From positions 1 through 64,000 of IMG/VR virus record IMGVR_UViG_3300023184_000027: a stretch of 64,000 bases of DNA. One strand, 5' to 3'. Position 1 is the stretch's first letter; each line of letters opens with the position of its first letter. This document shows, in pieces, positions 727 through 53,546 of this stretch. Below the pieces are notes generated by a model, which made no database searches, was not told the DNA's origin, and saw nothing but the letters and a program-made list of their open reading frames with translations. The position numbers and the translations under genes are program-made.

Positions 727-1038
727 TTAAAATAAATTGAGGGATGTAATTCGTTTATCCGTAATTTTTTCAACAACTTCAGTCATCAAAGATTTTAATC
801 TTTTATAATCAATACCTAATTGATTTGTGATATCACTAATGGTTTTAATACTAAACGCCATATCATCACCTATTTCATCATAAATAATGATAATATCACC
901 ATTTCTTAACGAAACCCATTGTTCTTCTTCACCATAGGTATCGTTTCGTCTCATTTTAGATACCACTTTTTTCTCTAATGGACCAATAAATTTGATGATA
1001 ACATCAATTAATTTATTTTCAGTAATCAATACTTTCAT
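727..1038 (-). CDS. Hypothetical protein with MKxxITE leader
   Basis: N-terminus MKVLITENKL; GTATTTAAT upstream. Confidence 0.7.
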   Translation of the reverse strand: MKVLITENKLIDVIIKFIGPLEKKVVSKMRRNDTYGEEEQWVSLRNGDIIIIYDEIGDDMAFSIKTISDITNQLGIDYKRLKSLMTEVVEKITDKRITSLNLF

Positions 1039-1134
1039 ACTATTAAATACTATTATTTTCCATTATAATGTAATATAACCCAATATTAAGACATTTTTTT
1101 CCACTAAAAGTGGTATTTTGGCAAATATTTTCCA

Positions 1135-1527
1135 CTATTCTATTGTTTTAACAGGAATATTAAAGTTATCCCAAAACCAATCAATAAATGGTTTGTGCCA
1201 TCTATGACCAAATAAACCATTTAATTGGTCTAGTTTATCAGTGTCTTCAAACTCTAATATTGGAGATTTTTCAATCATTTCTTTTAAAAAAACAGGACTT
1301 AAAGTTTCGGTTTCTTCACTACGCCAATAATCCTCACCATACCATCTGAATAGAGTGTTATCGCCACCATCTTCATAATCATCTGTATAGAATTCTATTG
1401 CATAATCAACTTCATTACCCCAATCATCTATGCCTGGTGTCCATCCAATATTATCAACATCAAACATACTATTAATATATTTGAGTATTAAATCATACAC
1501 TTTATCTTCAGTTATTATAATTTTCAT
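1135..1527 (-). CDS. Hypothetical protein, ITE leader + WF..N..PVK C-terminal family
   Basis: MKIIITEDKV; C-terminal WFWDNFNIPVKTIE. Confidence 0.75.
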   Translation of the reverse strand: MKIIITEDKVYDLILKYINSMFDVDNIGWTPGIDDWGNEVDYAIEFYTDDYEDGGDNTLFRWYGEDYWRSEETETLSPVFLKEMIEKSPILEFEDTDKLDQLNGLFGHRWHKPFIDWFWDNFNIPVKTIE

Positions 1528-1538
1528 ATTTATAAATA

Positions 1539-2384
1539 TTAAATTAAATCGGATAAGGGTAAAATATCAATAGAATTATCACCATAATTGGTAACAATAA
1601 CATTAGTATCATTTGACGCTATCCCATGAGGAAAACTAAATCCGGGGATTGTTTTAATAAAACTTAACTTATCGTCGATTAGTTTAAAATGTAATAATGA
1701 ATCTTGAGCTTGTAAGGTTATAAAACCATCCTCACCACTCAAACAAACCGCGTCAGTCTGACCATAAAAAGTTAATTCATCTATTTGTTTTAAACTAGGA
1801 TATTCAAATAAATATAAAATAGAATCGGTCACAGTAACTTTATTTGTCGCCGATGGTCGGCTACTTGAAGATGAGATTAATATTCTATCGTTGATGATTA
1901 AAATATCTTTAGGGTAATGCTTGAAATTATTAAATTGACGAACATAACCACTGTTAATATTCACATAGAAACATCCCCTATATGTATTATTACTTGTATT
2001 AGTAACAATCACATTATCATTATCAATGATTCTACACCCGTGTATTTGGTCTATTTGTTTTTTAACAATATCTTTAACAAAAACAATTTTATTATCAATT
2101 AAATTAAAAATAGAAATAACACCATATCCATTACCGGTTGATATTATTAACCCATCTTTATAATCAATTAAATCAGGACAATAATTTGTGGTAATTTCAT
2201 CTATGATGGTAAAATCGCCATTCTCAATGGTAATTAAATATATTTTTTTATTTAAAAATGATGCCACCAAAATTAAATTATCAGTCACAAATGAAACCGA
2301 TGTTGCCGTCGCATGTCTTTTATTTTGTCCAGCAAAAACTGTTGGGTATTTTTCTAAATTAAAATCCGGTAATTTAAATTTCAT
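1539..2384 (-). CDS. Beta-propeller-like protein (YncE/NHL-like)
   Basis: Repeated beta blades, PHGI/IHG motifs, VTNYGDNSI. Confidence 0.55.
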   Translation of the reverse strand: MKFKLPDFNLEKYPTVFAGQNKRHATATSVSFVTDNLILVASFLNKKIYLITIENGDFTIIDEITTNYCPDLIDYKDGLIISTGNGYGVISIFNLIDNKIVFVKDIVKKQIDQIHGCRIIDNDNVIVTNTSNNTYRGCFYVNINSGYVRQFNNFKHYPKDILIINDRILISSSSSRPSATNKVTVTDSILYLFEYPSLKQIDELTFYGQTDAVCLSGEDGFITLQAQDSLLHFKLIDDKLSFIKTIPGFSFPHGIASNDTNVIVTNYGDNSIDILPLSDLI

Positions 2385-2385
2385 A

Positions 2386-3144: not shown

Positions 3145-3597
3145 TTATATTTCTTCACCAAATAAATCATCTGTCCATCGTTCAGGGACAAGAACCACAA
3201 TATAACCTTTTGTTACATTAACAGCGGATGTTGGTAATAAGTTATTGATTTCTTCTAATAGTTCCTCATTTTCCTTAAAAACGATTCGTAATTTACCATC
3301 TTCAGCGGTATCAACAACTTTATGCTTATTATTTTCCATAATGGACTTGAAGTTTTCAATATCACCAAATTTATCTTCGGTTTCAATATCCAAATCACCA
3401 GTTAAAAATCTTTCAGGGACACTACTTTCACCTCCAGTTTTTAAATATTTAATTTCTTCGTCTGTCATTCCTTCAAGACCAACCTCATTATATAAATCCA
3501 AGATACTATCGTAATAATCGGTATCAAATTGTTCCGTCATAATTAATTTAATAATATCTTTTAATTCAGATTCTGTTAATTTTATAATCTTTGCCAT
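3145..3597 (-). CDS. Acidic hypothetical protein with KLTESEL leader
   Basis: MAKIIKLTESELKDIIKLIMTEQ; ATATTTATA upstream. Confidence 0.7.
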   Translation of the reverse strand: MAKIIKLTESELKDIIKLIMTEQFDTDYYDSILDLYNEVGLEGMTDEEIKYLKTGGESSVPERFLTGDLDIETEDKFGDIENFKSIMENNKHKVVDTAEDGKLRIVFKENEELLEEINNLLPTSAVNVTKGYIVVLVPERWTDDLFGEEI

Positions 3598-3796
3598 AAT
3601 TAGTTTTATCTATAAATATCTAATGAAATCGTTTATCCATTTTATAACACTTTTTTTAATGTTATATAAATTAGATGTGTTAAAAATATTACCGATATTA
3701 AGATAATAAATCCCAATAATATAAGACCTCCGGTTATTAAAAATTTTAAAAAAGTTTCCATATATTAAATTTAATAAAAGTTAAATAACAAATCAA

Positions 3797-3828
3797 TTTG
3801 ATTGTCTCAAAATTAATAATTATATTTG
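3797..3828 (+). promoter_or_regulatory. Bacteroidetes-type sigma-A promoter (-33 TTTG / -7 TAnnTTTG)
   Basis: TTTG-N20-TATATTTG just upstream of ATG 3833. Confidence 0.7.
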
Positions 3829-3832
3829 GGTT

Positions 3833-5056
3833 ATGGAAGAAATAATTAACAAACTAATAAAATATCATATAAAGGGTGTGGATACTTACACTTACAATGA
3901 CTCCACTTGGTTAATCTTTACGAAGACCAAACAATGGGTGATAGAATTAACCGATGGAAAAACTCTATGGTATAATTATAGTTTTTTTAATACCGTATTT
4001 TCTTTTGTATCGTTGGAGGTTGTTCAAAACCAACACCTCATTACAAAATGGGTGGAAGATAATGTGATAAATAAAGTAGAAGACATTTATTTTAGAGATG
4101 CCCGAGATAAAAAACAACAATTTGAAGACACCCTTGAATATGGGGTGAAACGAACCTTAAACGCTGTTGGAGACCCTAAACTTTTAATTGAAGACACTAT
4201 TGAAAATGGGGTGAAAAACATTAGAAATGTAAGGGTTAAACGGTTAGATTCTGTTGAAGACACAATTCAAAATGGGGTTAAGACTACCTACGCTTATCCT
4301 GACACATCCAAAGTTGGTGTTAATGACACCATACAAAATGGTGTGAAGAGTACCAAACCTTATGATTATGAACAAATCCCCGATGTTAATTATGTTATTG
4401 AAAATGGTGTTAAAGAAACACAATTTAACACTTACGAAAATAAAAGTTGGATTGAAGGCATTATTAAAGAAGGTGTAAAACAAACCTTACCTGAAGTGGG
4501 AAAATATATTAACGATGTTGAAGAGGTAATTCAAGAGGGGATAAATCATACTCAACCTCATCTTATAAAAAATAGATATATCGTTGAAGAGGTAATTGAA
4601 GATGGTGTTAAAAGTTCTCACCCACTCCAATATATCTCAAAAGAGATAATTGATGGGGTGGTTAATGATGGTATAATAGAAACCCACGATGATACATACC
4701 ACCACAAAGGAAGAATAGATGGCGTAATTAAGAATGGAGTTAAAGAAACTAAAACAACCGGTAATGATGACCTTACAGCAACTTTTCAATGGATGGATGA
4801 AAATAAAACCGATGATGTTCCCAAAATGATTGATGATATAATTGAGAATGGTATTAAAAAAACAAAACCCGCTAATGGTGACCTTGTATCCGCTATTGAA
4901 TGGATGGATGAAAATAAAACTTTGAATGTCCCCAAAATGATTGATGATATAATTGAGAATGGGGAAAAGATAAATGGAACTTATGCTGGTGGTCAACGTC
5001 AAAGTGAAAAATGTAAATCCGTTGTTGAATATGGAATAAAAAACCCCACCGATTAG
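3833..5056 (+). CDS. Tandem-repeat protein (about 22-aa I.NGVK repeats)
   Basis: About 13 repeats ending IENGVK/IQNGVK; near-exact DNA duplication 4789-4850 vs 4900-4961. Confidence 0.75.
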   Translation: MEEIINKLIKYHIKGVDTYTYNDSTWLIFTKTKQWVIELTDGKTLWYNYSFFNTVFSFVSLEVVQNQHLITKWVEDNVINKVEDIYFRDARDKKQQFEDTLEYGVKRTLNAVGDPKLLIEDTIENGVKNIRNVRVKRLDSVEDTIQNGVKTTYAYPDTSKVGVNDTIQNGVKSTKPYDYEQIPDVNYVIENGVKETQFNTYENKSWIEGIIKEGVKQTLPEVGKYINDVEEVIQEGINHTQPHLIKNRYIVEEVIEDGVKSSHPLQYISKEIIDGVVNDGIIETHDDTYHHKGRIDGVIKNGVKETKTTGNDDLTATFQWMDENKTDDVPKMIDDIIENGIKKTKPANGDLVSAIEWMDENKTLNVPKMIDDIIENGEKINGTYAGGQRQSEKCKSVVEYGIKNPTD

Positions 5057-5479: not shown

Positions 5480-5851
5480 TTACCAAGTTCTACACGCCCA
5501 ATATCTCGCTTTCCATCTTGGACCAGGAGTATCACAATTCATTCTTGCTCTAAAAGATTTTCTTCTTGCTGGATTATTCTTTTTGATTACCATTCTTTTA
5601 CCTTTGGCGGATTTTCCTCCAAATCCAAAATTTACCTTAACAACATTTCCTTTGTCGTTCTTAACATACACTTTAAACTTTTTTATATCGCCTTGCATAA
5701 TTTTACCAAGTTGGACTTTTCGTCCCTGATATTCAGCTTCCGTTAGTAAATCACCAACAACAAAGTTGGTTTCCTCAACGGAGCCATAAAAACTATCGTC
5801 TATATTGTTAAATAGTTTTTCGTACTGTGATTCTGTAATTATTAATTTCAT
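5480..5851 (-). CDS. Basic phage protein with ITE leader
   Basis: MKLIITESQY...LLTE then EAEYQGRKV...KVNFG...RKSFRARMNC...ARYWAC, a motif set I recognise from large-phage hypothetical proteins. Confidence 0.75.
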   Translation of the reverse strand: MKLIITESQYEKLFNNIDDSFYGSVEETNFVVGDLLTEAEYQGRKVQLGKIMQGDIKKFKVYVKNDKGNVVKVNFGFGGKSAKGKRMVIKKNNPARRKSFRARMNCDTPGPRWKARYWACRTW

Positions 5852-5946
5852 TTCTTTTCGTAATGAGTCATCGTTGGTTTATTCTCACCTTCGGCTAAAT
5901 AACCCTCCAATATCGTTTCTTGTCTTTCAGTAATTATAAGTTTCAT
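5848..5946 (-). CDS. Leader-only mini-ORF (32 aa, not in ORF track)
   Basis: MKLIITERQETILEGYLAEGENKPTMTHYEKK; stop overlaps next start (ATGA); ATATTTAT upstream. Confidence 0.55.
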   Translation of the reverse strand: MKLIITERQETILEGYLAEGENKPTMTHYEKK

Positions 5947-7821: not shown

Positions 7822-8100
7822 TTATTCTGAAATATCTTCAATACCGGCATCAGGAAAATTATCTTGAAGGTATCTCAACATTAAATCATTTGAGTTTCCC
7901 CCAAAGAAATCCTCCAACTCATCTTCCATATCATAACTTGCAAATATAAAACTACTTTTATTTTTCCATCCAAAAACATCCCCGTAACTCTTTAAATTTT
8001 GAAACTCCTTATGTTCGGGGTCATAAATTAAATTTGTTCGGTGATTAATATATTTAACGAACGCATCGTACATTCTACTTTCGGTGATTAGTATTTTCAT
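7822..8100 (-). CDS. Hypothetical protein with ITE leader
   Basis: MKILITESRM. Confidence 0.7.
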   Translation of the reverse strand: MKILITESRMYDAFVKYINHRTNLIYDPEHKEFQNLKSYGDVFGWKNKSSFIFASYDMEDELEDFFGGNSNDLMLRYLQDNFPDAGIEDISE

Positions 8101-8101: not shown

Positions 8102-8425
8102 TTAATAATTTAAATCTGATATATAAAATCGTGAGTTAGTTAATTTGGGTTGGTCAAATTTATCGGCAACATATTCTTTACAAATACTCACCAATTCAGG
8201 GATGGATATACTAAACATATTTTTGACGATACCAAAGTCATCACCATTAAAGTTAATAATTTCAGTTTCTGTATCATAATCAAATGCAACACGACCATCA
8301 CCATTCATATATTCTAATAGAACATGGGGAGCCCTCATACTCATCCTTCGTCTCCCGTGTTTTTCATAACCTTTGAGAACCATATCAAAATATCTAAACA
8401 CAAGTTGTTTTATATTATTCATCAA
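8102..8425 (-). CDS. Hypothetical protein (WF-family-like)
   Basis: VFRYFD...MFSI...YVADKF pattern shared with 6218-6475. Confidence 0.6.
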   Translation of the reverse strand: MMNNIKQLVFRYFDMVLKGYEKHGRRRMSMRAPHVLLEYMNGDGRVAFDYDTETEIINFNGDDFGIVKNMFSISIPELVSICKEYVADKFDQPKLTNSRFYISDLNY

Positions 8426-8775
8426 GCAAAGTTATTTATGATATAATTTAGCCCAATACCCAAATGTTTAATACCAAGAATATTTAAAAAATCGGATTCC
8501 TCTATTTTACGATTTTGTTTTTCACTTAAAACCAATACACCATATTCTTTTTGAGGTTGGGCATAATAATTATTACCATCAATATGAAACAAATACATTG
8601 GACCAAAATTGTTAAGTAACCATCTAAACTCCTCTCTACCATCAGAGAACAAGTATTGACCTTTAGGTCCTAACTCAATCCAATTTGTAATCACTTCAAT
8701 ATGGTCAGACAAATCATATCCCACCTCCTTGGTAATTAAATCTTTTATTTTATTCTCCGTAATTATAAATTTCAT
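8422..8775 (-). CDS. Hypothetical protein with ITE leader
   Basis: MKFIITENKI. Confidence 0.7.
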   Translation of the reverse strand: MKFIITENKIKDLITKEVGYDLSDHIEVITNWIELGPKGQYLFSDGREEFRWLLNNFGPMYLFHIDGNNYYAQPQKEYGVLVLSEKQNRKIEESDFLNILGIKHLGIGLNYIINNFA

Positions 8776-8792: not shown

Positions 8793-9314
8793 TTAAAATT
8801 TTACTTTTGTTTTGATTGACTCTAAACCTTTACCAATAGCCTCAACCCATTTGTTTTGTCCTTTTAAACTATAGTAGTATTTTCCATTCTCTAACTTATA
8901 ATCATATGACTTATCATTGGTTGTATTTATCTTACTTGTCTGTAATTTACCACTATCTTGTTCCATTACCGATTTAAAACGACCAAGGTCTTTAGTTGTG
9001 ATTTCACCGGCGGAATCATCATGACAATAACCATCCCCTTTCTTACAAACCCAAATTGGAATGTTTTTTTCCTTAAGGTATCTTCCCATAGTATTATTAA
9101 AATCAACATTTGTCCAATTACCATCCAAAGGTAAATTAAGTTTGTAATATTTGTTAAAAAAAGCAGCTAGTTCTTTTGTCTCTTGAGATTTCGGTGAAGA
9201 CAATGCTTGAGGACTTAAAGTTTGCTGTTTTAATGCTTGTTCAGATAACATTTGTTTCTCCAATCTCATATTAGCTTCTTGGATATGTCTGATTTTACTA
9301 AAACTTCTATTCAT
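8793..9314 (-). CDS. Leader-bearing protein, possible peptidoglycan-binding-like domain
   Basis: MNRSFSKIRHIQEAN...LSEQ; L..DG.W motif (LPLDGNW). Confidence 0.5.
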   Translation of the reverse strand: MNRSFSKIRHIQEANMRLEKQMLSEQALKQQTLSPQALSSPKSQETKELAAFFNKYYKLNLPLDGNWTNVDFNNTMGRYLKEKNIPIWVCKKGDGYCHDDSAGEITTKDLGRFKSVMEQDSGKLQTSKINTTNDKSYDYKLENGKYYYSLKGQNKWVEAIGKGLESIKTKVKF

Positions 9315-9441: not shown

Positions 9442-10572
9442 TTATTTTATTTTTTTACTAATAGTGAGGATTTTATCTGTTGGTGAATAAACTGGTGGTT
9501 CAGGACTTTCCCAAGATTCACGACCTTGTATTATTTTATAATTACGGTATATCGGACCATTTGATATTAAAATAAAATCTGACTTATATGATAATTTAGG
9601 TGGTTTAACCCTTTTTGAAAATGGAATATAATACTTATCATCTAATTTATATATTCCCTCATTTTTGGCGTTAACCGGTTGGAAAATAATCCGTTTACCC
9701 TCATCTTCAACAACAACTACTTCAGAATAATCTGTTTTTGTTGAGGGACAAAAATTTTGAACAACTTTTGAATTAGGTAAGAATTTTTTAATATGAGGTT
9801 CATAATTACTTTTTGACATAAAAGTTGGTTTATAACTAATATTTTTGAGTAATGTATTTAAAAATTCACCTTTAAATAATTTATCTTTACTATCGTATAC
9901 CCATTGAACAAAATCATTATGTTCAAAAGTTTTCATTTGTTTAATATATGATTTAATAATTAAACTTATTGGGTCATTTTCAAATATAATGTAATTAAGT
10001 TTTGACCAACTAACACCTTTTTCATTAATAGAATTTGGTAGGGAATAAATATTTAAAAACCCTTCAGTTTTATCACAATACTTTGAATTGTAAACTCCGT
10101 AATTATCACTATAAATTTCTTTCAATGATTTTTCAATAATATTACGAAGGTCTTTACATTGATTGTTATCACAATAACCTTTGTTAGACCTATAAGCTTT
10201 AGAGCGTTCAAAAAATAATCGTTCCGTTTCTTTCTCAGATAACTTACCAATATGTCGTTCAAACTTTTCATCAAAATTAATATTATATTTTCTTCTAATA
10301 TCAGACAAATTCATATAAAAATTTGAATTACCTGATTTTTGAACCAAATCAGCATCAAATATATATTCTTTTCCTGTAGTTATATCAGTGAATATAAACA
10401 CTTCAGTTTCCGGTTTTTTTTCAAATCGTCCGGTTGATTTAAATTGTACCATATGAATACCAAATTGAGGTAATAGATGAGGTTCACTAAATCCATTAAA
10501 ATCAATATCCTGTGTTTGTTCCTCAGTTTCCTTTAATATTCTATACTGTTGTTCTGTTATAATAAATTTCAT
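9442..10572 (-). CDS. Large hypothetical protein with ITE leader
   Basis: MKFIITEQQYRILKE; ATATTTATT upstream. Confidence 0.75.
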   Translation of the reverse strand: MKFIITEQQYRILKETEEQTQDIDFNGFSEPHLLPQFGIHMVQFKSTGRFEKKPETEVFIFTDITTGKEYIFDADLVQKSGNSNFYMNLSDIRRKYNINFDEKFERHIGKLSEKETERLFFERSKAYRSNKGYCDNNQCKDLRNIIEKSLKEIYSDNYGVYNSKYCDKTEGFLNIYSLPNSINEKGVSWSKLNYIIFENDPISLIIKSYIKQMKTFEHNDFVQWVYDSKDKLFKGEFLNTLLKNISYKPTFMSKSNYEPHIKKFLPNSKVVQNFCPSTKTDYSEVVVVEDEGKRIIFQPVNAKNEGIYKLDDKYYIPFSKRVKPPKLSYKSDFILISNGPIYRNYKIIQGRESWESPEPPVYSPTDKILTISKKIK

Positions 10573-10590
10573 ATTAATAAATATACCATC

Positions 10591-39143: not shown

Positions 39144-39842
39144 ATGCAACCAGAAATAACAGAAGACCAATTAAAATCCCTTAAATTATTCGCAATCTAT
39201 TGTAGAGGTTATGGAGCCGATGAAGTTAATTACACCATATACACAATGAATTGTGAGGAAGATTGGAGAGACGATAGATTTTATCCAACTAACGGGGTTA
39301 GTAGTATAGAAGGATATGATAGAATTAATGAAGTTCTTGACCAAATTATTGACCAAAACGAGTTATTTGAAAATAGTGTTACTGATTGTGAAAATAGAGG
39401 ACAATTAGTGTTTAACATTGATTGTAAAGAAAGAACATTAACTATAAACGCTTGGGAATGGCTATATGGTTATAACGAATCTTCAGCATCTTGGACATTA
39501 GAAGAACTTAAAAAGGATGATGAAAACTATTATAACGAAGTTGTACAAGTATTTGAAATGTTGGGTGATGATAGAACCGCAAGTGTTAGTTTTGAAGGAA
39601 GTGGTGATTCAGGTTCTTTAGATAATTATATGGATATTGAGGGTCAAAGTGAAGATATTTCAGCCGGTCTTGAAGATTTATTGTATAGATTATTAGAAAA
39701 TCATTATGGTGGTTGGGAAAATAACGAAGGTGGTAGAGGAGATTTTATATTTAATCCCTCCGATGGTGAGATACAATTAGAATTCCTTGAAAATACCGAA
39801 GAAGAAGTTTCAGTCCCACTAAATTTCACAATAAAGTTTTAA
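39144..39842 (+). CDS. Protein with DUF6878-like C-terminal domain
   Basis: FEGSGDSG...GWENNEGGRG. Confidence 0.7.
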   Translation: MQPEITEDQLKSLKLFAIYCRGYGADEVNYTIYTMNCEEDWRDDRFYPTNGVSSIEGYDRINEVLDQIIDQNELFENSVTDCENRGQLVFNIDCKERTLTINAWEWLYGYNESSASWTLEELKKDDENYYNEVVQVFEMLGDDRTASVSFEGSGDSGSLDNYMDIEGQSEDISAGLEDLLYRLLENHYGGWENNEGGRGDFIFNPSDGEIQLEFLENTEEEVSVPLNFTIKF

Positions 39843-42286: not shown

Positions 42287-42601
42287 TTATTTACCAATTA
42301 TTATATCACTATAATCTAATTTACTCATACCATCAATTTCTTTCTCGTCAACAACCTCATCATACATAAATGCTTTTACAACAGATGTCACACTTTCTTC
42401 AGATTGAGCAATTTTACTCTCCATCCAATCCTCAAGTTGTTCTCCATCTTCTAAATGTTCCCACATTTTATGAGCTAAAGTCGCTATTATAAATAATTGT
42501 TGTTTAGCCATATAAGAACCTTTACCATCGTTTTCTTTAATGGTTTTCATTTTTGTTACCAATTTTTCAAATTGTTTTTCAGTAAGTATAATGTTTTTCA
42601 T
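42287..42601 (-). CDS. Small phage protein with LTE leader (start corrected to 42601)
   Basis: MKNIILTEKQF...IKE; MAKQQL...LEDWMESKI. Confidence 0.7.
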   Translation of the reverse strand: MKNIILTEKQFEKLVTKMKTIKENDGKGSYMAKQQLFIIATLAHKMWEHLEDGEQLEDWMESKIAQSEESVTSVVKAFMYDEVVDEKEIDGMSKLDYSDIIIGK

Positions 42602-45603: not shown

Positions 45604-47013
45604 TTATTTTTTTGTTTCAATTTTACTTTGTAATACTTTCACAAACTCATTCTGAATCATTTTAACAAACTTTACATAAGGAGAATCGTCAGAATCCGGA
45701 TTGTATTTATAATCACCTTTTGGTGGACGAGCGCTTCTACCCATAAAATTTAATCCCGATATATTTGTAATACATTTGTGTCCTCCACTATTAGATTGGA
45801 TAAAGTCCCAAGCATTTACTTTAATATCATCCAACATCTTTCTATGTTCTTCAGGTAATTCAGAAAAAGGTTTTTCCATCATCTCACCAATGTGAACTAA
45901 TTTTCCCTTACCATCTTCCATTGTCTTATATTCTTTACCATATAAAGCAACAAAATCTTTAAAAGTAAACCCAACTGATTCTCCACTAAAATCTTTTGAC
46001 GATTCCGATATCCATTTAATCGTTGATAATGGAATTTCTCTTTGTTTTAATTGGTCTTCCCATTTAGATAAAACTTCTTGAGCTATCTCACCTAAATTAA
46101 CACCTTTTAATTCTCTTTCTTTTTTGAATGGATTACAAGATGCTTGAACTAATCCTAATGGCCAAGCAATAACTATAAAGTCAGCATCAGGATTATTTTT
46201 AAATGGAGTATATCTATCGTAAGAACCTGGTTTAAACATTGACCCACCACCATACTGAACAATAATATTACCCAATACTTTAACATTGGGATTGGTTTTC
46301 ATTGACTCAACATAATCTTCTTTATTTTTTTCAAGTTGTTCAGGTTTTGCATATCCTTTCTCAACCATTATTCTTTTGATGTTGTGTAATATGTTTAACA
46401 ATGATGGAGTTGATTTCATAACCAACTCATCTAAAAACCCAGGTTTGTTTTTAAACGCTAACAACAATTTATTAGCAACTAATCCCATCGCCGTTTTATT
46501 TTTAGATAATGATTTTTCTTTATCTAATCTAAATAAATAAGAAATTACTTGGTCAACACTAATATCATTTATTGAGTAATTAGCAGAATCCACAGTAGAA
46601 ATAAGTAATATATCCTCATTTGGAAATATATCTCGTGGAGAGACTATTTGAGATAATGTTTCAACATTTGACCTAGAAGGTCTAAAAGATGTTGATGTTG
46701 TTTCTTCCGCACCAGCTTGTCTATCGTGGTGGTCCGTGTGAATCATAAACATTGGTTTACCGTGAGCAAAATCTACTAATACCGGCATAATCTCACCACT
46801 AGCGTCAGGTTTTTTAACTGCAAATTCTTTATCACCGTATTGGATAATTTCACAATCAACAACTTTAATACCATTACTTTCAAGATATTGTTTCATAGCA
46901 ATTGCTGAAACAACACCATCAAGGTCCATATGATAATATATCTTAGCCTTCTGATATCTTTTAGCGAGAGATTTTATTTCCCTTAAACCACTTTCTTTAA
47001 TTAATTTTTTCAT
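45604..47013 (-). CDS. DHH-family phosphoesterase with IKE leader
   Basis: HMDLDG, VDFAH, TDHH, DSA, GGH (DHHA1); MKKLIKESGLRE. Confidence 0.8.
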   Translation of the reverse strand: MKKLIKESGLREIKSLAKRYQKAKIYYHMDLDGVVSAIAMKQYLESNGIKVVDCEIIQYGDKEFAVKKPDASGEIMPVLVDFAHGKPMFMIHTDHHDRQAGAEETTSTSFRPSRSNVETLSQIVSPRDIFPNEDILLISTVDSANYSINDISVDQVISYLFRLDKEKSLSKNKTAMGLVANKLLLAFKNKPGFLDELVMKSTPSLLNILHNIKRIMVEKGYAKPEQLEKNKEDYVESMKTNPNVKVLGNIIVQYGGGSMFKPGSYDRYTPFKNNPDADFIVIAWPLGLVQASCNPFKKERELKGVNLGEIAQEVLSKWEDQLKQREIPLSTIKWISESSKDFSGESVGFTFKDFVALYGKEYKTMEDGKGKLVHIGEMMEKPFSELPEEHRKMLDDIKVNAWDFIQSNSGGHKCITNISGLNFMGRSARPPKGDYKYNPDSDDSPYVKFVKMIQNEFVKVLQSKIETKK

Positions 47014-47014: not shown

Positions 47015-47962
47015 TTATATCAAACCCTTCACCGCATTTCCTAACAATGGTGCCAATAATGTTGTTATTGGGTCAGACCCTGTTTTAGGTTGAGTTGGAG
47101 GTGTTGCTTTCATTTCCTGATTTTCACCACCAAATTCACTATTAAATAATTCTTGATTTTTTGAGTCACTATTAAATTTTGCAACTTTTTGTTCTACATC
47201 CGGAACCTTTTGTTCCAATTCATCCGGACCAACAAAATTATGAATACCTAATGTATCTAATAACGCCAAATACCACTTACTTCTTCTCATCAATGACCTT
47301 GTCGCCGCATTACCACCAATTCTTGGGACACCACCAACAAGTCTATTAAGGAAGGATGGTTTTAACGCCTCATAACCTCTGAAAGCCTTGAATTTACCTG
47401 TCGTACCCATTTCTTTACTTGCTTTAGTAAATAATTTCACATATTCTTCCAATAAATTAACAAATCTACTACCTAAATAAGGAACTTTACCAATAGAAGA
47501 CCTTAATGTAGTTATTAATTTCTCACCCCAAGCCGGAGATTTTTCTACCATTTTAGCAATTGGTCCACCAACTGATTTGGCAGCACCAGCAACTTTAACA
47601 GCATCACCAGTAAGTGTCGCCGCTTTAAATGCTTTAGCTCCTTCACCACCTAATTTCATAACACCCACAACCGGTTTAGCTATAATATCACCAAAAATAG
47701 GTAAAGCAGCTATAAAAGATAAAATTGCAAACAATTTATCTCCTTGTCTCCAATAACTAATACCATTAACTAAATCCACAACACCTGTTGGGTCGAATAT
47801 ACCCGCAATATCACCAACGGTATTATACCATTTTGATTCTGAAAGTAATTTTTTCTTTTCAGGGTAAAGAGTTTTCATTACCTCAACAACAAAAATTTTC
47901 TCACCACGAGTTAAACCTTCCCACTTTTCAGTTAACTCATTAATTTGATTTGATTTTTTCAT
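47015..47962 (-). CDS. Leader-bearing protein with pre-toxin TG (PT-TG)-like hydrophobic hairpin
   Basis: INE/LSE sites, then DIAGIFDPTGVVDLVNGISYWRQGDKLFAILSFIAALPIFGD. Confidence 0.55.
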   Translation of the reverse strand: MKKSNQINELTEKWEGLTRGEKIFVVEVMKTLYPEKKKLLSESKWYNTVGDIAGIFDPTGVVDLVNGISYWRQGDKLFAILSFIAALPIFGDIIAKPVVGVMKLGGEGAKAFKAATLTGDAVKVAGAAKSVGGPIAKMVEKSPAWGEKLITTLRSSIGKVPYLGSRFVNLLEEYVKLFTKASKEMGTTGKFKAFRGYEALKPSFLNRLVGGVPRIGGNAATRSLMRRSKWYLALLDTLGIHNFVGPDELEQKVPDVEQKVAKFNSDSKNQELFNSEFGGENQEMKATPPTQPKTGSDPITTLLAPLLGNAVKGLI

Positions 47963-47964: not shown

Positions 47965-48324
47965 TTAATCTAACCCCAAGAAATGAATACCTTTATCAAT
48001 AATACTACCTTCTTGAGATACACAACTTTTGAATATTTGAACATCCGAGTCAGGCATTTTACTTTGTGTTGAAGGTCCCCAAATACCGTCCACAGGATAA
48101 ACACCAATTTTAGATTGGTATTTACTCAATGCTTGTTTAACACTATCACCCAAAAGACCATCAACTTTTAGTGGTTGATTCTTATCATCTCTGTGTCCTT
48201 TTTTATTTAAAAAACATTGAATACCCTTCTTTAATTCAGGACTTTCATTTTGTTCAGTAACCAATCCGTATATAGAACGGATGTCACTTTTTTCTTCTTC
48301 GGAAATTATAAATCTTTTTGCCAT
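47965..48324 (-). CDS. Peptidoglycan-binding-domain protein with ISEE leader
   Basis: IQCFLNKKG...VDGLLG...AL..YQ..IG...DGIWGP.T. Confidence 0.8.
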   Translation of the reverse strand: MAKRFIISEEEKSDIRSIYGLVTEQNESPELKKGIQCFLNKKGHRDDKNQPLKVDGLLGDSVKQALSKYQSKIGVYPVDGIWGPSTQSKMPDSDVQIFKSCVSQEGSIIDKGIHFLGLD

Positions 48325-48367: not shown

Positions 48368-50275
48368 TTATAACACCTCTTCTTTTAATTCTAATTTTGT
48401 TTGTTTCCTTTCATCAATGAATGCTTGAACTCTTTTCCGAGCAACTTCCGTATAATCCGGAGATAACTCAATTCCAATCCATCGTCTCTCTAACACTTCT
48501 GCCGCCACAGCTGATGTTCCACTTCCCATGAAGGGGTCAAGAACAATATCATCCTTATATGTAAGTATCTTAATCGCCTTCCCTGGTATATCCATACTAA
48601 AGGTCGCCTTGGTTAAGGATTTAGTATCAGCAAAGTATTCCCACCTTCCAAACACCAAGTTCATAAACTCTTTCTTATCCTCATCCTTATAAACCATCTT
48701 ATTTTTGATAGTTCCATCTTCCTGAATTACTTTAGTTGGTTCTCCCGTCCATTGAGATTCACCTTTGAGTAATTTCTTACTTGTCTTCTTATATGCTAAA
48801 ATAATACACTCTTTTGGATTATAGATATAAGGACTTGATGCTGACATCCATGAGTTACCACACCACACTAATTGTCCTGATTTTTCAACTAATAATGTTT
48901 TATTAGGTACTGACACACAATAAACTTTATCATCATAATCAATTGTGGTAACATTTTTTTTCTTTATATAACTTTGTTCTTTGTTGAGGATTTGAATTGT
49001 TGTCATTGGGTAATTAGATTTTATTAATTTACCATTCCAAAGTCTATCTTTTGCAAAATAACTATATAATGAACAAATTCTCCCCGATTCAAATAATAAT
49101 CTAAGAATTTGGTCTTTCATTATTTCACTACATACAGAAATTTTCCACAATTCATTGTCTTTAGTAAAAGACCCATCACCATAAAATATCCATAATAATA
49201 ATATTTCTTTCTGTCTTTTAGACATATTAAAAACATAATCAGGTATTGTTCTTAAATTTTTACTTTTTGTATCAAGTAAAAACGACGCTAATTGTTTTGA
49301 ACAACAAAAATATTCGTTTTTTTGTTTTTTATATTCAAAATTAAATGGTAATCTCTCCAACAATTCTTCAATTTCTTTTAAAAATTTTATTTTTGTTTGA
49401 TAAATAGATATTTTGTATATACCTCGTTTAACATCATATGTTAATGAACCATCTGTTAGAAAAATACCTAAAAATCTCACCCAATCATCCGCATCAACAA
49501 TTACCGAATCTCCATTTCTATATATCTTTTTACTTCTTAACCCATACTCTACAGGAGGTATTACTACAGTTTCTACATCCACAACATTATTTAACCCATT
49601 ATGACTTCTAGGTATTGTGAAAACATCTTGAGTTATCTCATTAAATGGTATAACATCTATTTTAGAGTTGTCTACTCTAACCATATTATGGTTTTCTGTT
49701 ATAGTAAGATTAACCGAACGAGTTTTAATATTTACTAATTTACCTTTAAATGGTTTTTCAATATAATCAAAAGCCTTTTGATACTCAATTTCTTTAGTTG
49801 TAGGATTTAATGTCATAAATAAATCCGTCTTAATATCAACATCTTTAAAAAATTTAAGACCATTATTTGTCATAACTTTAGTTTCATTATCATAACAACC
49901 CCAAGCTGTTTGTCTCACTCTATGTGGAGAATCTTCAGTTAAATCAACCATCCCGTAAAATTTAAAACCAACTTCCTTCATCTTCATCCAAAATTCAGCA
50001 TTGAATAATATTCTTCCACCTCTTTCTTGAACATTCACTTCTATTGGAACATTGATGGCAATTCTTCCGTCATCCTTTAATACTCTATAAGCTTCAGTTA
50101 ACCATTTTGTTGTAAAATCCCAATACTCATCCATTGGAATACTATCGTTATAGACATCGTATTTGATGTTAACCCCGTATGGAGGACTAGTTACAACTAA
50201 ATCAACACAACCTTCAGGAAATGTCTTCATAACCTCAACACACTCACCATTTATAATCTTTCCTGTCTCTATCAT
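48368..50275 (-). CDS. Beta-class N4-C/N6-A DNA methyltransferase containing an intein
   Basis: TSPPY (motif IV) N-terminal, DPFMGSGT (motif I) C-terminal. Confidence 0.9.
   Translation of the reverse strand: MIETGKIINGECVEVMKTFPEGCVDLVVTSPPYGVNIKYDVYNDSIPMDEYWDFTTKWLTEAYRVLKDDGRIAINVPIEVNVQERGGRILFNAEFWMKMKEVGFKFYGMVDLTEDSPHRVRQTAWGCYDNETKVMTNNGLKFFKDVDIKTDLFMTLNPTTKEIEYQKAFDYIEKPFKGKLVNIKTRSVNLTITENHNMVRVDNSKIDVIPFNEITQDVFTIPRSHNGLNNVVDVETVVIPPVEYGLRSKKIYRNGDSVIVDADDWVRFLGIFLTDGSLTYDVKRGIYKISIYQTKIKFLKEIEELLERLPFNFEYKKQKNEYFCCSKQLASFLLDTKSKNLRTIPDYVFNMSKRQKEILLLWIFYGDGSFTKDNELWKISVCSEIMKDQILRLLFESGRICSLYSYFAKDRLWNGKLIKSNYPMTTIQILNKEQSYIKKKNVTTIDYDDKVYCVSVPNKTLLVEKSGQLVWCGNSWMSASSPYIYNPKECIILAYKKTSKKLLKGESQWTGEPTKVIQEDGTIKNKMVYKDEDKKEFMNLVFGRWEYFADTKSLTKATFSMDIPGKAIKILTYKDDIVLDPFMGSGTSAVAAEVLERRWIGIELSPDYTEVARKRVQAFIDERKQTKLELKEEVL
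48854..49897 (-). mobile_element. Intein (348 aa) with LAGLIDADG homing endonuclease
   Basis: WG|CYDNETKV...TENH...FLGIFLTDGS...FYGDGS...VYCVSVPN...WCGN|S. Confidence 0.9.
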
Positions 50276-50576: not shown

Positions 50577-50797
50577 TATTTATTTTCTAAATTTTCTATT
50601 CTACGATTAAGATACCAAGCCGCCTTGAGTAAATCTTCCAATTCTTTCTCCGGATATTTCTTACCCGCTCTTGAGATATATTTCACCGTATTACCCAAAT
50701 GAAACCCTAAATCCCAATTTTCTATCACCTTAATAGCCTCATATGGATTATCTACACCCCCATAATGGTCGGGGTTTTTCACCATTTCTTTACTCAT
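50576..50797 (-). CDS. DUF3310 family protein
   Basis: NPDHY...EAIKVIE...GN.VKYI.RAGKK...EDL.KA.WYL. Confidence 0.85.
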   Translation of the reverse strand: MSKEMVKNPDHYGGVDNPYEAIKVIENWDLGFHLGNTVKYISRAGKKYPEKELEDLLKAAWYLNRRIENLENK

Positions 50798-51367
50798 AAT
50801 TTTACCAAATAATATTTACCTAATTTTATACTCTTTCTATAACCCTGTCTAACAGAAAACAATGGTTTTGTTGTTATTTTAAACCCAACCCCACTCTTAC
50901 CTGAAGTAATATAAAACTGACTTTTAGATTTACCTATTAAGAGGGGAAAGTTAAATATTCTAATCACTGTTTGACTACAACCACTACCAATATGATATGT
51001 TTTTTTAGATAACCACATAATAATCTTTCGCTGTTTTACTTTCTACAATAATACCGGATTCTATCAAAAAATCCAGCTCTTTTTTTGTTTCTTCAATATT
51101 CTTTTTAAGAATATACTTTGAAATGTAATTAATGTGGATTGGTTGTCTTAATTTACCAATCAAATTACTAATTTGTTTTTCGTCCATAATTAAGTTTTTC
51201 TTTAATTTTATCTTCAGTCAATCCTTTCATATACCATTTATAAACTTTGGACGATATTTTATCTGATAGAATCAACATATCCGATTTAAACAGCAAAGTT
51301 AATCCTAAATCATTATTAAAACAATTTTTTATTGATTTTTTATCAATTATTTTTTTGTTAAATCCCA

Positions 51368-52138
51368 TTAAGACAATAATCTTTTATTTTGTTTTCCACT
51401 TTGACTTATATACGCTAATATTTTCCTTTTAAAGATTGGTACTAATGTTTCCTCTAACGGAAAAATATCACTACAAAAAACTTCAAATAATGGATGTGAT
51501 TCTTCATTATTCTTTTCATAAGTTTTAGAAAATTTAGATATAATTTGGGGAATTGTCAAATCGTCTTGGATACCTTCGTAAACTAATTTTAACGATGTTT
51601 TAGTTTGATTCTTTGTTTTGTAAATTTTTCTTGTAGTATATTGCCAAATATATAATTTATCCGGTAATTTGTAGTAAAAAAACCCTGACTTGTTTGATAA
51701 ATTATTTTTGTTTTTTTTCATCACAACATCTATGGAATCATAAACAATACTCCAAATAGATTTTGCAAAATTAAAATAGTCGTATAATTGGGGTTGACTA
51801 TTTTTTAAAATTTTTCGGTATTCAATTACTTCTTCGTCCGCTAGCACGGGAATATCTTTAACTTTTAAATCTGAAAAAATTAATTCATCATCTTTTGATG
51901 ATAATTTTTTATCAATATAAAGTATTTTGTTTTGTGTCAATAAGGTTTGCATATTACCCAAATGTAATGAAAGCTCAATAAACATTGGGTAAACCTCCAT
52001 TCTCTCAAGATGTTTATTCATCTTTTGAAAATAGTCTAATAAGACATATTGTTTTTGTTCTGCATCAAGCACACCATCAAATAACCAATCGGTATTCATT
52101 ATAAATGATGTCTTTTTATTTTTTTGTTTCTTTTCCAT
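51368..52138 (-). CDS. Hypothetical protein
   Basis: 256-aa ORF heading the MTase operon. Confidence 0.7.
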   Translation of the reverse strand: MEKKQKNKKTSFIMNTDWLFDGVLDAEQKQYVLLDYFQKMNKHLERMEVYPMFIELSLHLGNMQTLLTQNKILYIDKKLSSKDDELIFSDLKVKDIPVLADEEVIEYRKILKNSQPQLYDYFNFAKSIWSIVYDSIDVVMKKNKNNLSNKSGFFYYKLPDKLYIWQYTTRKIYKTKNQTKTSLKLVYEGIQDDLTIPQIISKFSKTYEKNNEESHPLFEVFCSDIFPLEETLVPIFKRKILAYISQSGKQNKRLLS

Positions 52139-52187
52139 ATATTATTATATTAATTATATGAAAATATATTAAAGAAATGAATAGTTT

Positions 52188-53546
52188 TTAACCAACTCTC
52201 ATAACATAATATCTAGTATTGTTAACAACTACATCATCATATGTACCATCGTATCCATTCATCATACCCCAACCATCATCATCAACTAATCCTTGAGCTA
52301 AAGCATCTTTATCAATATAATCCTCAATACTTAATCCAAAATCACTCATATAAGATGTAATATTATTCTCAACATCTTTTAACATTGAGTCTACCTTATT
52401 ATCAATCATATCTTGGGATGGTTCCATATCAACCTCAATATTATCTAATTCTTCTTGAAGATAGTCTATGTGGTCTTGTGTTTGTTCATATTCTGTTGAG
52501 TCCGAATCATCTATATTTCTTAATCTTTCTTCATATTCTTCAATTTCAGATTCAAGTTGTTCTTTCCTTTCTTCTTGTTCTGAGGTTAACTCAAAATCAT
52601 CATCACTAAAATAGACATCCGGTTCGTTAGATATATCATTTTCATAAAATTCTCTAAAATAATCAAGAACCTCATCTTCGTTAATATAATAATCAATAAA
52701 ACCACTTCTAAACCCCTCAACACCTATTTCATCAATTAAATTTTTTGCGTAATCTAACGCAGAACTTTCCATCTCATCTTCATCACCAACAGAATATTCT
52801 CTACCTTTAAATCCTGGTAGTAAAACCTCAAATTGGGATAAACCATAATAACTGTAATCACCAGGGTACATATCGTAAACATCCGCAACATCTTCTGTTA
52901 ACCCATCAATTTCTTCTTGAACTTCCTCAATAGTATTTAATATTTCAACATTTTCATCGGGGTCACCTTCTCTATCTTCATCTTCATATTGAGCTTCAAG
53001 GTCTTCTTTCTTTTTTATTAATACCGATAATTTTTCTTTATCATCCTCATCTAAAACTTTTACATCACCCTCTTGTTCTAAATATTCTAATAACGCTTGA
53101 GCCTTCATACCTAACTCGTCTTCCTGTTCAAGGTTCCAATCATCACCATCTCTATATTCATTCATTGTTTGTTTCTTATGATTCAATTCCTCCAATTCTC
53201 GTCTTTTTTCTCGAGGTGAACCGTAATCAGTAGTATAACTCTGAACCTTTATATTTGAAATATCAGACACCATAGTATTACTGATATTTAAATAACCATC
53301 AATATAACCAATATTACCTAATGAGGTTGTTGGAGTATTCGCAAGATTTAAGTCATCAGTTATCCATAATGGTTTTCCTCCAAATTTTTTAAGATTCGTT
53401 ATAGCTTTTCCATTATAACTAGTTAAAACCATTAAATCCGTATATTCTTTAGGCGTCATTTTATAATAATCGTCCTCAACTTGTTCAACAATTGTTTTAA
53501 TAAAACGAAATAACCCTTCTTCTGTAAGTCTAATTTTTCTGCTCAT
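52188..53546 (-). CDS. Very acidic coiled-coil protein with RLTEE leader
   Basis: MSRKIRLTEEGL...IVEQ; GTATTTATA upstream. Confidence 0.75.
   Translation of the reverse strand: MSRKIRLTEEGLFRFIKTIVEQVEDDYYKMTPKEYTDLMVLTSYNGKAITNLKKFGGKPLWITDDLNLANTPTTSLGNIGYIDGYLNISNTMVSDISNIKVQSYTTDYGSPREKRRELEELNHKKQTMNEYRDGDDWNLEQEDELGMKAQALLEYLEQEGDVKVLDEDDKEKLSVLIKKKEDLEAQYEDEDREGDPDENVEILNTIEEVQEEIDGLTEDVADVYDMYPGDYSYYGLSQFEVLLPGFKGREYSVGDEDEMESSALDYAKNLIDEIGVEGFRSGFIDYYINEDEVLDYFREFYENDISNEPDVYFSDDDFELTSEQEERKEQLESEIEEYEERLRNIDDSDSTEYEQTQDHIDYLQEELDNIEVDMEPSQDMIDNKVDSMLKDVENNITSYMSDFGLSIEDYIDKDALAQGLVDDDGWGMMNGYDGTYDDVVVNNTRYYVMRVG

Follow-up and report, generated by a model that had tools for sequence, protein, structure and literature searches.

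In phage T4, short N-terminal peptides on otherwise unrelated internal proteins end in I-x-E and are cut by the prohead protease gp21. The genes are late and sit in hypervariable loci, and three carriers are present in T4. According to a review (PMC9026906), gp21 cuts after L/I-X-E, propeptides are 7-65 residues long, targeting depends on residues 4 and 7, and processing depends on residues 8 and 10. We read the T4 sequences themselves. IPII and IPIII start MKTYQEFIAE|A, with the spacing Y4-x-x-F7-I8-x-E10, and gp23 is cut at L63-T64-E65|A66. Alt, a packaged and injected ADP-ribosyltransferase, starts MELITE, although this propeptide is a single case and not a family-wide tag, and the review does not establish whether it targets Alt to the head on its own. 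In other T-even phages, CTS-like leaders are placed in front of diverse bodies of variable internal-protein genes, which is thought to serve the arms race with host defences (PMC9026906). In the phiKZ-like giant phages (phiKZ, 201phi2-1, SPN3US), dozens of head-internal ejection or inner-body proteins are cut after Glu by a diverged gp21-type protease and are expelled into the host. However, their motif is S/A/G-x-E and not I/L/V-x-E, their propeptides are long and not a shared short tag, and many of them are paralogous families.

We analysed a window of 64,000 nucleotides (positions 1 to 64,000 of IMG/VR record IMGVR_UViG_3300023184_000027), in which about 30 unrelated proteins had been proposed to share an [ILV]-x-E leader of three types (A, B and C). 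This observation was confirmed, although a few of the listed members were weak. The coordinates in the original prediction were the low (stop) ends of minus-strand ORFs, and the N-termini lay at the high ends. The strict pattern M[KR][ILFV][ILV][ILV][TKSN]E gave 14 hits, all on the minus strand and none on the plus strand. Thirteen were gene starts, at 1038, 1527, 5851, 5946, 8100, 8775, 10572, 23076, 25483, 25828, 27040, 35279 and 38712, and one, at 3488, was out of frame. The chance expectation was 0.003, or 0.012 with an N-terminus-specific null. About 10-14 more genes carried variants. Six genes started at an internal Met directly before the leader, and their starts were corrected: 5848 at 5946, 17819 at 18382, 19545 at 20009, 34674 at 35279, 40728 at 41666 and 42287 at 42601. 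The proteins had been called unrelated, and this held, since after removal of the first 25 residues only 25148 and 25499 matched each other.

Fourteen genes were graded as strong type A, all on the minus strand. The gene at 727-1038 (103 aa, MKVLITENKL) lay directly downstream of 1135-1527 (130 aa, MKIIITEDKV), which had TATTTAT at -11 and an HMM score of 18.7. The gene at 5480-5851 (123 aa, MKLIITESQY) carried a DUF5872/phrog_7595 domain starting near residue 42. The adjacent 32-aa ORF at 5848-5946 (MKLIITERQE; TATTTAT at -11) was a remnant of the first module of a two-module gene that is fused in relatives. These were followed by 7822-8100 (92 aa, MKILITESRM), 8422-8775 (117 aa, MKFIITENKI), 9442-10572 (376 aa, MKFIITEQQY; TATTTAT at -11) and 22675-23076 (133 aa, MKIVITENKI; TATTTAT at -11). 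The paralogues were 25148-25483 (111 aa, MKLLIKESRR) and 25499-25828 (109 aa, MRIVIKESRR). The remaining strong genes were 26432-27040 (202 aa, MKIIITELQY), 34674-35279 (201 aa, MRIIVNETQY; TATTTAT at -11), 38173-38712 (179 aa, MKFILTESKL) and 42287-42601 (104 aa, MKNIILTEKQF; TATTTAT at -20).

Five type A genes were weaker, again on the minus strand. These were 3145-3597 (150 aa, MAKIIKLTESEL; TATTTAT at -21), 27042-27419 (125 aa, MDIKISEEKI; TATTTAT at -11), 45604-47013, 47965-48324 and 52188-53546 (452 aa, MSRKIRLTEEG; TATTTAT at -11). The gene at 27042 was the first of a run of five leader genes. The gene at 47965 placed MAKRFIISEEE on a PG_binding_1 domain, had TATTTAT at -23 and headed the run 47965, 47015, 45604. 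The gene at 45604 placed the short leader MKKLIKE on a DHH-like phosphoesterase, and it was supported by its orthologues.

All five type B genes were real, and all were on the minus strand. They were 17456-17812 (118 aa, MNLQTTIRRIIMEE), 17819-18382 (187 aa, MNLQEQTNRIKQMM; TATTTAT at -11), 18716-19282 (MELNEQLTKIKTMMGINE), 19545-20009 (154 aa, MNLQENIHRIHQMM) and 20011-20784 (257 aa; TATTTAT at -11). The body of 18716 was an Acb1-like 2H phosphodiesterase domain (Pfam Acb1 E = 6e-7; phrog_755). For type C, also on the minus strand, 25825-26430 (201 aa, MKDLIKKILREE) and 40728-41666 (312 aa, MRDLIKKILKEQ) were clear, and 31600-33192 (530 aa, MKLIESIKQIISE; TATTTAT at -13) was plausible. However, 8793-9314 carried a different but conserved N-terminus (MNRSFSKIRHIQEANMRLEK; TATTTAT at -21), similar to one next to gp23 in L232, a leader-bearing locus of a relative, and 47015-47962 (315 aa, MKKSNQINELTEK) was doubtful. 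One leader-like gene on the plus strand, 39144-39842, had been missed; it started MQPEITEDQLKSLK (beginning MQPEITEDQL) and had TATTTAT at -22. In the case of the cargo domains that had been named, only the Acb1/2H and PG-binding folds, and weakly DHH, were confirmed. The flavodoxin, ART-like and PT-TG-like folds were not confirmed.

To examine whether the leader was conserved beyond the window, 132 independent IMG/VR examples were fetched with a 7-residue pattern. Positions that were not searched were also conserved: S/N/E at 8, Q at 9 (104 of 131), Y/L/F at 10 and L/I at 13 (113 of 131). The tag was widespread in uncultured viral contigs of about 30% GC, up to about 320 kb. Of 163 extended matches, 142 were at residue 3 or earlier, and most of the rest followed a mis-called start. 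All synonymous codons of K, I, T and E were used, which meant that the tag was selected at the protein level. The leaders were also modular. Homologous bodies carried types A, B or C interchangeably in the 26432, 25825, 17819 and 5480 families: homologues of 26432 carried type B and type C leaders on the same body, those of 25825 carried type A, and those of 17819 carried type C. The DHH orthologues had at least six different leaders, each ending in (I/L)-x-E just before the conserved body, which begins SG(I/L)R(D/N)I. The PHROG and Pfam profiles started only after residues 20-42. In the AlphaFold model of 5480-5851, the leader was coil plus a short helix at pLDDT about 55, followed by a disordered stretch at residues 17-34 and then a confident body. 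This evidence was of moderate to low confidence, but it placed the tag on a disordered tether.

Compared with T4, type A leaders read M-K-(I/L)-(I/L)-I-T-E, with the same length class (7 residues) and the same P3-P1 residues as the Alt start and the gp23 site. The second half of type A has the same h-x-x-h-h-x-E spacing as the IPIII targeting sequence, and this spacing recurs in types B and C. However, there were about 25-30 carriers in 54 kb here, against three in T4, with several interchangeable leader types, and type A has an extra M-K-h-h-h-T-E piece in front. The cargo was mostly acidic and included enzyme folds. In comparison with the CTS-like leaders of other T-even phages the principle is the same, but the scale, the leader sequence, and the host and phage lineage differ, since these are uncultured freshwater phages with genomes of about 300 kb.

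A gp21-like prohead protease had been set as a condition for the capsid-loading reading, and it was found in the clade. Relatives carried a terminase, a portal, a gp21-type protease and gp23: homologues of gp17, gp20, gp21 and gp23 occurred in leader-bearing loci. The gp20, gp21 and gp23 of this clade were T4-type, not phiKZ-type. The alignment with T4 gp21 kept invariant His and Ser columns, which we took to be the catalytic residues, and Pfam recorded Peptidase_S77, Portal_T4 and Gp23. The loci L232 and L368 carried these next to homologues of window genes 20011 and 5480 at 75-85% identity; those of 20011 next to gp23 were 84% identical. However, gp21 was not found in the 129 kb of the phage's own contig that was read, and this contig was not among the best 80 gp21 loci. 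The presence of gp21 was inferred from relatives and from the T4-like gene content, which includes a gp25-type baseplate on the same contig. Leader genes lay between gp21 and the scaffold or gp23 in two further loci, L116 and L210, and a run of four lay beside gp23 in L232 and L368. In the loci fetched by the leader pattern, however, the neighbourhood of leader genes and head genes was no more than chance would give, about 4 of 120. The same sites had also been expected in structural proteins, and scaffold-position proteins had 2-2.5 times the background density of [IL]-x-E.

It is possible, though unlikely, that the leader is instead a docking or oligomerisation peptide for a partner unrelated to the capsid, such as a phage or host chaperone, an adaptor or a protease, and marks late proteins for common handling in the cytoplasm. 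The strand-plus-helix shape on a flexible tether and the conservation past the first Glu would fit this, and a DnaJ gene lies at about 73 kb of the same contig. However, this does not explain why every variant ends in (I/L/V)-x-E directly before the body, the match to the T4 Alt, gp23 and IPIII processing sites, or the leader genes inside head modules.

The timing of the leader genes was then examined from the upstream motifs. TATTTAT lay within 30 nt upstream of 79 of 81 gp21 genes, 22 of 45 gp17 genes and 20 of 57 gp20 genes, against 24% of other genes. On the window's own contig it preceded gp25, an 1845-aa baseplate protein and the fibre genes, whereas TAnnTTTG preceded the primase-like and RuvC-like genes. 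We therefore read TATTTAT as the late promoter. In the window it preceded 14 of 29 leader genes against 6 of 72 others (p = 2e-5), and the other leader genes lay downstream in the same tight runs. An equal frequency of the leader behind host-type promoters would have counted against the hypothesis, and this was not observed. The original claim that no leader gene lay behind such promoters held apart from 31600 and 52188, which had both motifs, and in 4,390 genes of related loci 2% of leader genes had TAnnTTTG upstream against 7% of other genes (p = 0.003). In addition, there was only 1 leader gene among 78 replication, nucleotide-metabolism and baseplate genes at 57-129 kb of the same contig.

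Since the late promoter abuts the ATG, the transcripts would be nearly leaderless, and the shared codons might be an mRNA adaptation in which an A/U-rich, unstructured start is selected for efficient initiation. The motif sat at -11 or -12 for 55 of the 81 occurrences upstream of leader genes, there was no Shine-Dalgarno sequence, and the leader codons shifted moderately towards A-ending forms. However, this reading was considered very unlikely. About half of the leader genes had no promoter of their own and overlapped the previous gene, and gp25, gp21 and other genes with the same promoter at the same distance lacked the leader. I/L/V/F substituted for one another, and types B and C differed in nucleotides from type A but shared its hydrophobic spacing and final Glu. 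The motif also occurred internally at the junctions of fused modules.

Based on the above results, the best reading was a portable, T4-style prohead-loading propeptide, which we held with moderate confidence. The original interpretation, that a portable tag packages dozens of cargo proteins in the head for co-injection with the DNA, was partly supported: every prediction that could be checked by computation came out as expected, but the core claim is still inference. In this view, genes behind the TATTTAT promoters would be transcribed late together with the head and baseplate genes. Their products would start with a short extended piece (M-K-h-h-h-T/K-E), often followed by an amphipathic helix (S-Q-Y/F-x-x-L-L/I-x-E), with types B and C having the helix alone. 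This piece would dock the protein onto the scaffolding core during prohead assembly, and the gp21-family serine protease would cut after the Glu of (I/L/V)-x-E, freeing the mature protein inside the shell. The protein would later be expelled with the DNA into the next host, while some cargo may be degraded or lost. The likely cargo includes an Acb1-like 2H phosphodiesterase, a DHH-like phosphoesterase and a peptidoglycan-binding protein, which would make the set a pre-loaded counter-defence and entry kit. The analysis itself demonstrated the motif, its selection at the protein level, its modularity, its link to the late-promoter motif and the T4-like nature of the clade including the protease, whereas docking, cleavage, retention in the head and injection were inferred. 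Nothing showed packaging, cleavage or injection, and packaging is untested. There was no virion proteome, cleavage data or cultured relative, and all hits came from metagenomes. Because Q9, Y10 and L13 were conserved after the first Glu, cutting at Glu7 would leave a conserved helix on the mature protein, and the data did not indicate which Glu is used, if any.

It also counts against the loading reading that the leader proteins were mostly acidic (median pI 5.5), whereas the T4 internal proteins are basic and DNA-bound. An unlikely alternative is that the leader proteins enter the prohead core and are cut, but act only in assembly as auxiliary scaffold or size-determining parts and are degraded or expelled before DNA packaging, as with T4 gp22, gp67 and gp68, and are not injected cargo. 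The acidic character resembles scaffold fragments, leader genes sat at the gp67/gp68/gp22 positions in L116 and L210, and core fragments are reported to leave the T4 head (PMC9026906). However, the bodies include enzyme and binding folds (Acb1-like, DHH-like, PG-binding, Pterin_4a) with no obvious role in assembly, and they were hypervariable between relatives and clustered in an accessory region, like the T4 internal-protein loci.

The leader marked the boundaries of hypervariable genes, the same body was found behind different leaders, and fused or split forms existed. These might suggest a DNA-level junction that promotes shuffling of gene cassettes by recombination, like the promoter-stem-loop cassettes of T4-type phages, with a peptide that has no function of its own. 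This was considered the least likely reading. The nucleotide sequence was not conserved beyond what the amino acids require, and conservation followed amino-acid classes and helical spacing.

The 208-kb IMG/VR contig 3300023184_000027, of which positions 1-64000 form the window, was examined first. The DNA was about 30% G+C, and almost all genes were on the minus strand. Near-identical or related contigs reached 308-322 kb, including the 322-kb near-twin 3300042482_000702. A megablast search with 20 kb against cultured phages found no match at the DNA level, and no tRNA genes were found. The coordinates listed in the original prediction were the stop ends of minus-strand ORFs, and the N-termini at the other ends read as it had described. 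The strict pattern M[KR][ILFV][ILV][ILV][TKSN]E occurred 14 times, all on the minus strand. Thirteen of these were gene starts and one was out of frame, whereas 0.003-0.012 would be expected by chance. Six ORFs started at an internal Met just before the leader. After trimming 25 residues, an all-against-all BLAST found only one paralogous pair among the leader genes, 25148 and 25499. Thus, the observation that otherwise unrelated proteins share a leader was correct. However, a few of the listed members were weak, since 47015 was doubtful and 8793 carried a different conserved N-terminus.

We next asked whether the leader was conserved as protein or as DNA. The Thr, Ile, Lys and Glu codons of the leader (K2, I4, I5, T6 and E7) used all synonymous forms, with only a moderate shift towards A-ending codons. 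Nucleotides conserved independently of coding, as in a regulatory or shuffling cassette, were therefore not observed. A recombination junction was considered a remote possibility, and an mRNA or translation feature was considered very unlikely. A degenerate DNA pattern for M-K-x-I-I-T-E gave at least 120 stretches in IMG/VR, and about 140 of the 154 matches started real ORFs on contigs of about 30% G+C. In these independent sequences, the positions that were not searched were also conserved, with S/N/E at 8, Q at 9 (104 of 131), Y/L/F at 10 and L/I at 13 (113 of 131). The full type A leader was therefore about 16 residues, M-K-I-I-I-T-E-S-Q-Y-K-K-L-(I/L)-x-E. Of 163 matches to this extended motif in 4,495 distinct proteins, 142 were at residue 3 or earlier, and most of the rest followed a mis-called start. 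This was the location expected of a T4-type propeptide of 7-20 residues. A word search of 5.8 billion proteins with the first 40 residues found only metagenomic sequences and no cultured source. The leader did not fit a Sec, Tat or lipoprotein signal peptide, which has a positive n-region followed by a hydrophobic core of about 10 or more residues. It had only 3-4 hydrophobic residues, followed by T/K-E and a charged helix. This was judged by inspection without a predictor, and true signal peptides in the window, for example at 33254 and 43430, looked different.

The three leader types behaved as interchangeable modules on homologous bodies. The 26432 family carried type A (MKIIITELQY, MKFIITEEQF), type B (MNLQETIRRILREE) and type C (MKLINTIIRIVNEE) in front of the same body, and the 25825, 17819 and 5480 families behaved likewise. 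Orthologues of the DHH-like protein at 45604-47013 showed at least six N-termini, including MKKLIKE, MRQIITE, MKIIITESQFRMMIKE and MKNLIRKFLKEHTLILE. In the 635-kb uncultured phage LR745206 the N-terminus was MISKYNQFINE. Each ended in (I/L)-x-E directly before the conserved body, which begins (S/G)G(I/L)R(D/N)I. In a stretch of this phage (LR745206.1, 85871-127595), a different recurrent N-terminus, (Y/F)-x-x-F-(I/L)-x-E, for example MISKYNQFINE and MIKKYLDFIKE, occurred on roughly 10 of about 55 genes, and it had the spacing of the T4 IPIII targeting sequence MKTYQEFIAE. In 250-aa DUF5872 proteins of relatives, a leader-like I-I-Q-I-(S/T)-E-(E/D)-Q-F-x-R-L-F-E lay internally between two modules. 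In the window (5480-5946, minus strand), the two halves were separate ORFs of 32 aa (5848-5946) and 123 aa (5480-5851), each starting with the leader, whereas the gene was fused and next to gp23 in relatives (compared with 5567-6316 of the relative locus L291). Two other internal cases also sat at fusion junctions.

Searches of about 35 window proteins against Pfam and PHROGs left most leader proteins as orphans. Where family profiles matched, they matched the bodies only from residues 20-42 onward. The leader plus a linker is therefore an add-on. An Acb1-like (anti-CBASS) 2H phosphodiesterase domain was found behind a type B leader at 18716-19282 (minus strand), in a run headed by a late-type promoter. 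The flavodoxin, ART-like and PT-TG-like folds named in the original prediction could not be confirmed. A phmmer search of three large leader proteins against the PDB gave only chance-level hits. The AlphaFold model of 5480-5851, built from 23 sequences, had a mean pLDDT of 69. Residues 1-6 were coil, residues 7-14 formed a helix at pLDDT about 55, residues 17-34 were disordered, and the body (residues 38-123) was at pLDDT 70-90. A Foldseek search with this model gave nothing with E <= 0.001. In the 250-aa fused form, the internal leader lay in a disordered stretch at residues 101-163, but that model was poor. Only single chains were modelled. The models fit a tethered, accessible tag rather than part of a fold. 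A docking peptide for a cytoplasmic partner was considered unlikely, although it was one of the main rival readings.

A gp21-type prohead protease had been named beforehand as a point on which the capsid-loading interpretation would be judged, and it was sought in relatives and on the contig itself. T4 proteins read from the T4 record found homologues of gp17, gp18, gp19, gp20, gp21 and gp23 in leader-bearing loci. The gp21 alignment with T4 kept invariant His and Ser columns, which we take to be the catalytic residues. Pfam hits recorded in the relative locus L368 and similar loci were Terminase_6N, Portal_T4, Peptidase_S77 and Gp23, and the gp21-family protease was present in the relatives L116, L149, L210, L232 and L368. 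L232, which was fetched by gp21 and not by the leader, held the order gp17, gp20, gp21, scaffold, gp23. Beside gp23 was a run of four leader genes, namely a DUF5872 protein, a Pterin_4a protein starting MRIIITE, an 84%-identical homologue of window gene 20011-20784, and a protein starting MKKIIISE. In contrast, the co-occurrence of head genes with leaders in loci fetched by the leader pattern was not used as evidence, because about 4 of 120 is what chance gives. In relatives, a ribosomal protein S21 gene sat inside the head module between the portal and gp21 (L368, 9243-9434, and equivalents).

On the contig of the window, no gp21 gene was found in positions 1-129 kb. A walk from 64 to 129 kb found collagen-like and Fib_succ fibre genes, glutaredoxin, thioredoxin, Dam and DnaJ, a sigma-70 (regions 2 and 4) factor, a lysin (Amidase_2), SbcC/SbcD-like and primase-like genes, a baseplate block with GPW_gp25, NrdA and NrdB (ribonucleotide reductase), a DnaB-family helicase, an RNase H-like exonuclease and a RecA-like protein, but no head module. 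Two gp21 searches of IMG/VR returned 518 to more than 599 loci, and this contig was not among the best 80. Exact-protein look-ups did not link the gp21 contig from the same sample to this genome. These results left the presence of the protease in this phage undecided. However, the gene content fits a T4-type phage, and gp21 is regarded as a core gene in T4-type phages, a point of general knowledge that was not tested here. We rate the presence of gp21 in this genome as very likely but unproven.

The leader was then compared with known T4 substrates, read from T4 itself. Alt begins MELITE, gp23 has L63-T64-E65 followed by A66, and IPIII and IPII begin MKTYQEFIAE followed by A. According to a review (PMC9026906), gp21 cuts after L/I-X-E, and propeptides range from 7 residues (Alt) to 65 (gp23). 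The first 10 residues of IPIII suffice for head targeting, with residues 4 and 7 serving targeting and residues 8 and 10 serving processing, and the targeting sequence may be a general way for T4-like phages to load diverse proteins. The first half of type A (M-K-h-h-I-T-E) was close to the start of Alt and to the gp23 site. All 29 listed genes had [ILV]-x-E ending by residue 13, consistent with the gp21 motif at the level of sequence only, since cleavage itself was not tested. The h-x-x-h-h-x-E spacing of the IPIII targeting sequence was present at positions 10, 13, 14 and 16 of type A (Y10-x-x-L13-L/I14-x-E16) and in type C, and type B also shared the hydrophobic spacing. The residues differed and their role was not examined, so this comparison did not settle whether they serve targeting. 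The phiKZ-type motif S/A/G-x-E did not apply, because the P3 residue was I, L or V in every leader. Cleavage sites in scaffold proteins had also been proposed as a check. Proteins at the scaffold and gp67/gp68 positions in relatives started with K-S-I-L-E or N-S-I-I-E-E, and they had 2-2.5 times the background density of [IL]-x-E. Loading for assembly only, without delivery, was also considered unlikely.

Two promoter-like classes were present across the window (for example at 1528-1545, 10573-10590 and 23077-23094) and in the loci L210, L232 and L418. (A/G)TATTTAT(A/T) abutted the ATG of structural and leader genes, mostly at -11, and lay at -11 or -12 from many leader ATGs. TAnnTTTG lay 12-31 nt upstream of other genes. 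TAnnTTTG is the -7 box typical of Bacteroidota, and together with the lack of Shine-Dalgarno sites it hints at a Bacteroidota host. In 80 loci selected by gp21, TATTTAT lay within 30 nt upstream of 79 of 81 gp21 genes, 22 of 45 gp17 and 20 of 57 gp20, against 24% of other genes. The T4 late motif TATAAATA was not used. On the contig of the window, TATTTAT preceded gp25, the 1845-aa baseplate protein and the fibre genes, whereas TAnnTTTG preceded the primase-like and RuvC-like genes. In the window, 14 of the 20 genes with TATTTAT within 25 nt were leader genes (Fisher p = 2e-5), and the other leader genes lay immediately downstream in the same runs. An equal frequency of the leader motif on early or host-promoter genes had been set out in advance as a result that would count against the interpretation. 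Across 4,390 genes of related loci, leader genes were enriched for TATTTAT (odds ratio 2.1, p = 2e-6) and depleted for TAnnTTTG (odds ratio 0.28, p = 0.003). The late timing shared with the head genes was inferred from the promoter class and was not measured. A candidate reader of the TATTTAT promoters is the sigma-70 family factor with regions 2 and 4, which is encoded at about 82 kb of the same contig (3608-4408 of the stretch L377), and a full-length DnaJ is encoded at about 73 kb (3353-4276 of the stretch L207). Leader genes were not simply late genes. Only 1 of the 78 genes at 57-129 kb carried the leader, and it was the first gene of the fibre operon.

Based on the above results, the most likely reading is a T4-style, portable prohead-loading propeptide processed by a gp21-type protease, which we hold with moderate confidence. 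The original prediction of a modular capsid-loading system was partly supported. The shared leader, its position, its codon use, its exchange between homologous bodies and its association with the TATTTAT motif were observed directly in sequence, whereas late expression, the protease in this genome, and loading and processing in the head were inferred. No cultured member exists, and neither the presence of processed proteins in virions nor the packaging of a foreign protein by the leader was measured here. The principle itself is known from T4. The scale (about 25-30 carriers in 54 kb), the interchangeable leader types, the enzyme cargo including an Acb1-like domain, and the phage lineage are new. 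Full-text searches for the motif, or for the capsid targeting sequence in metagenomic giant phages, found nothing. A further reading is possible but was rated as somewhat less likely than not. In this view, a widespread clade of uncultured T4-like phages, on viral contigs of up to about 320 kb, has turned the T4 head-targeting propeptide into a combinatorial loading system, with interchangeable leader types grafted onto dozens of rapidly exchanged late genes, including an Acb1-like anti-CBASS phosphodiesterase and a DHH phosphoesterase. Each virion would then arrive with a ready-made, strain-specific set of counter-defence and entry enzymes that act before any phage gene is expressed, and fused two-module genes with an internal leader would be small polyproteins cut apart inside the head. 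If the tag works as proposed, it would be the largest known set of head-packaged cargo defined by one simple portable signal. Anti-defence enzymes such as Acb1 could be delivered as protein rather than expressed after entry, which changes how the timing of phage-host conflicts is understood. It would also give a sequence rule for predicting injected proteins in thousands of uncultured phage genomes, and it would add short tags for loading foreign proteins into phage heads, as the T4 targeting sequence already allows. In addition, the analysis gives a promoter classification for this clade, with TATTTAT for late genes and TAnnTTTG for host-type promoters.

A possible C-terminal tag, NEFRG, was seen upstream of many leaders. 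It turned out to be the end of one conserved 170-aa gene next to the tail sheath gene and is not a tag. In L095, L106, L150, L192 and other loci, this gene, which lay upstream of the tail sheath gene and ended in NEFRG(L/I), was regularly followed, with a TAATG overlap, by one or more leader genes and then by the gp18 sheath gene. This looks like a hypervariable slot for leader genes inside the tail/neck module. From about 129 kb of the contig onward (1-9955 of the stretch L421 and 1-29 of the stretch L419), two giant ORFs (2105-2108 aa, and more than 1663 aa) without any Pfam hit lay next to the RecA-like and helicase genes. A 2459-aa collagen-repeat protein at 57749-64000 (minus strand), continuing to contig position 65128, lay in a region of 46% G+C, against 30% elsewhere. 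It was followed by a 1007-aa Fib_succ_major + DUF285 protein (54713-57736), and a 600-aa Fib_succ_major protein lay at 65470-67272 on the other side of the collagen gene. These are probably fibres. Homing-endonuclease-like genes were found at 12034-13548 and 14213-15325 (both minus strand), namely a 504-aa protein related to GIY-YIG-associated proteins of Vibrio and Rhizobium phages, and an endonuclease VII/HNH-like protein. At 48368-50275 (minus strand), an N6/N4 DNA methyltransferase was interrupted by an intein with a LAGLIDADG homing-endonuclease domain.
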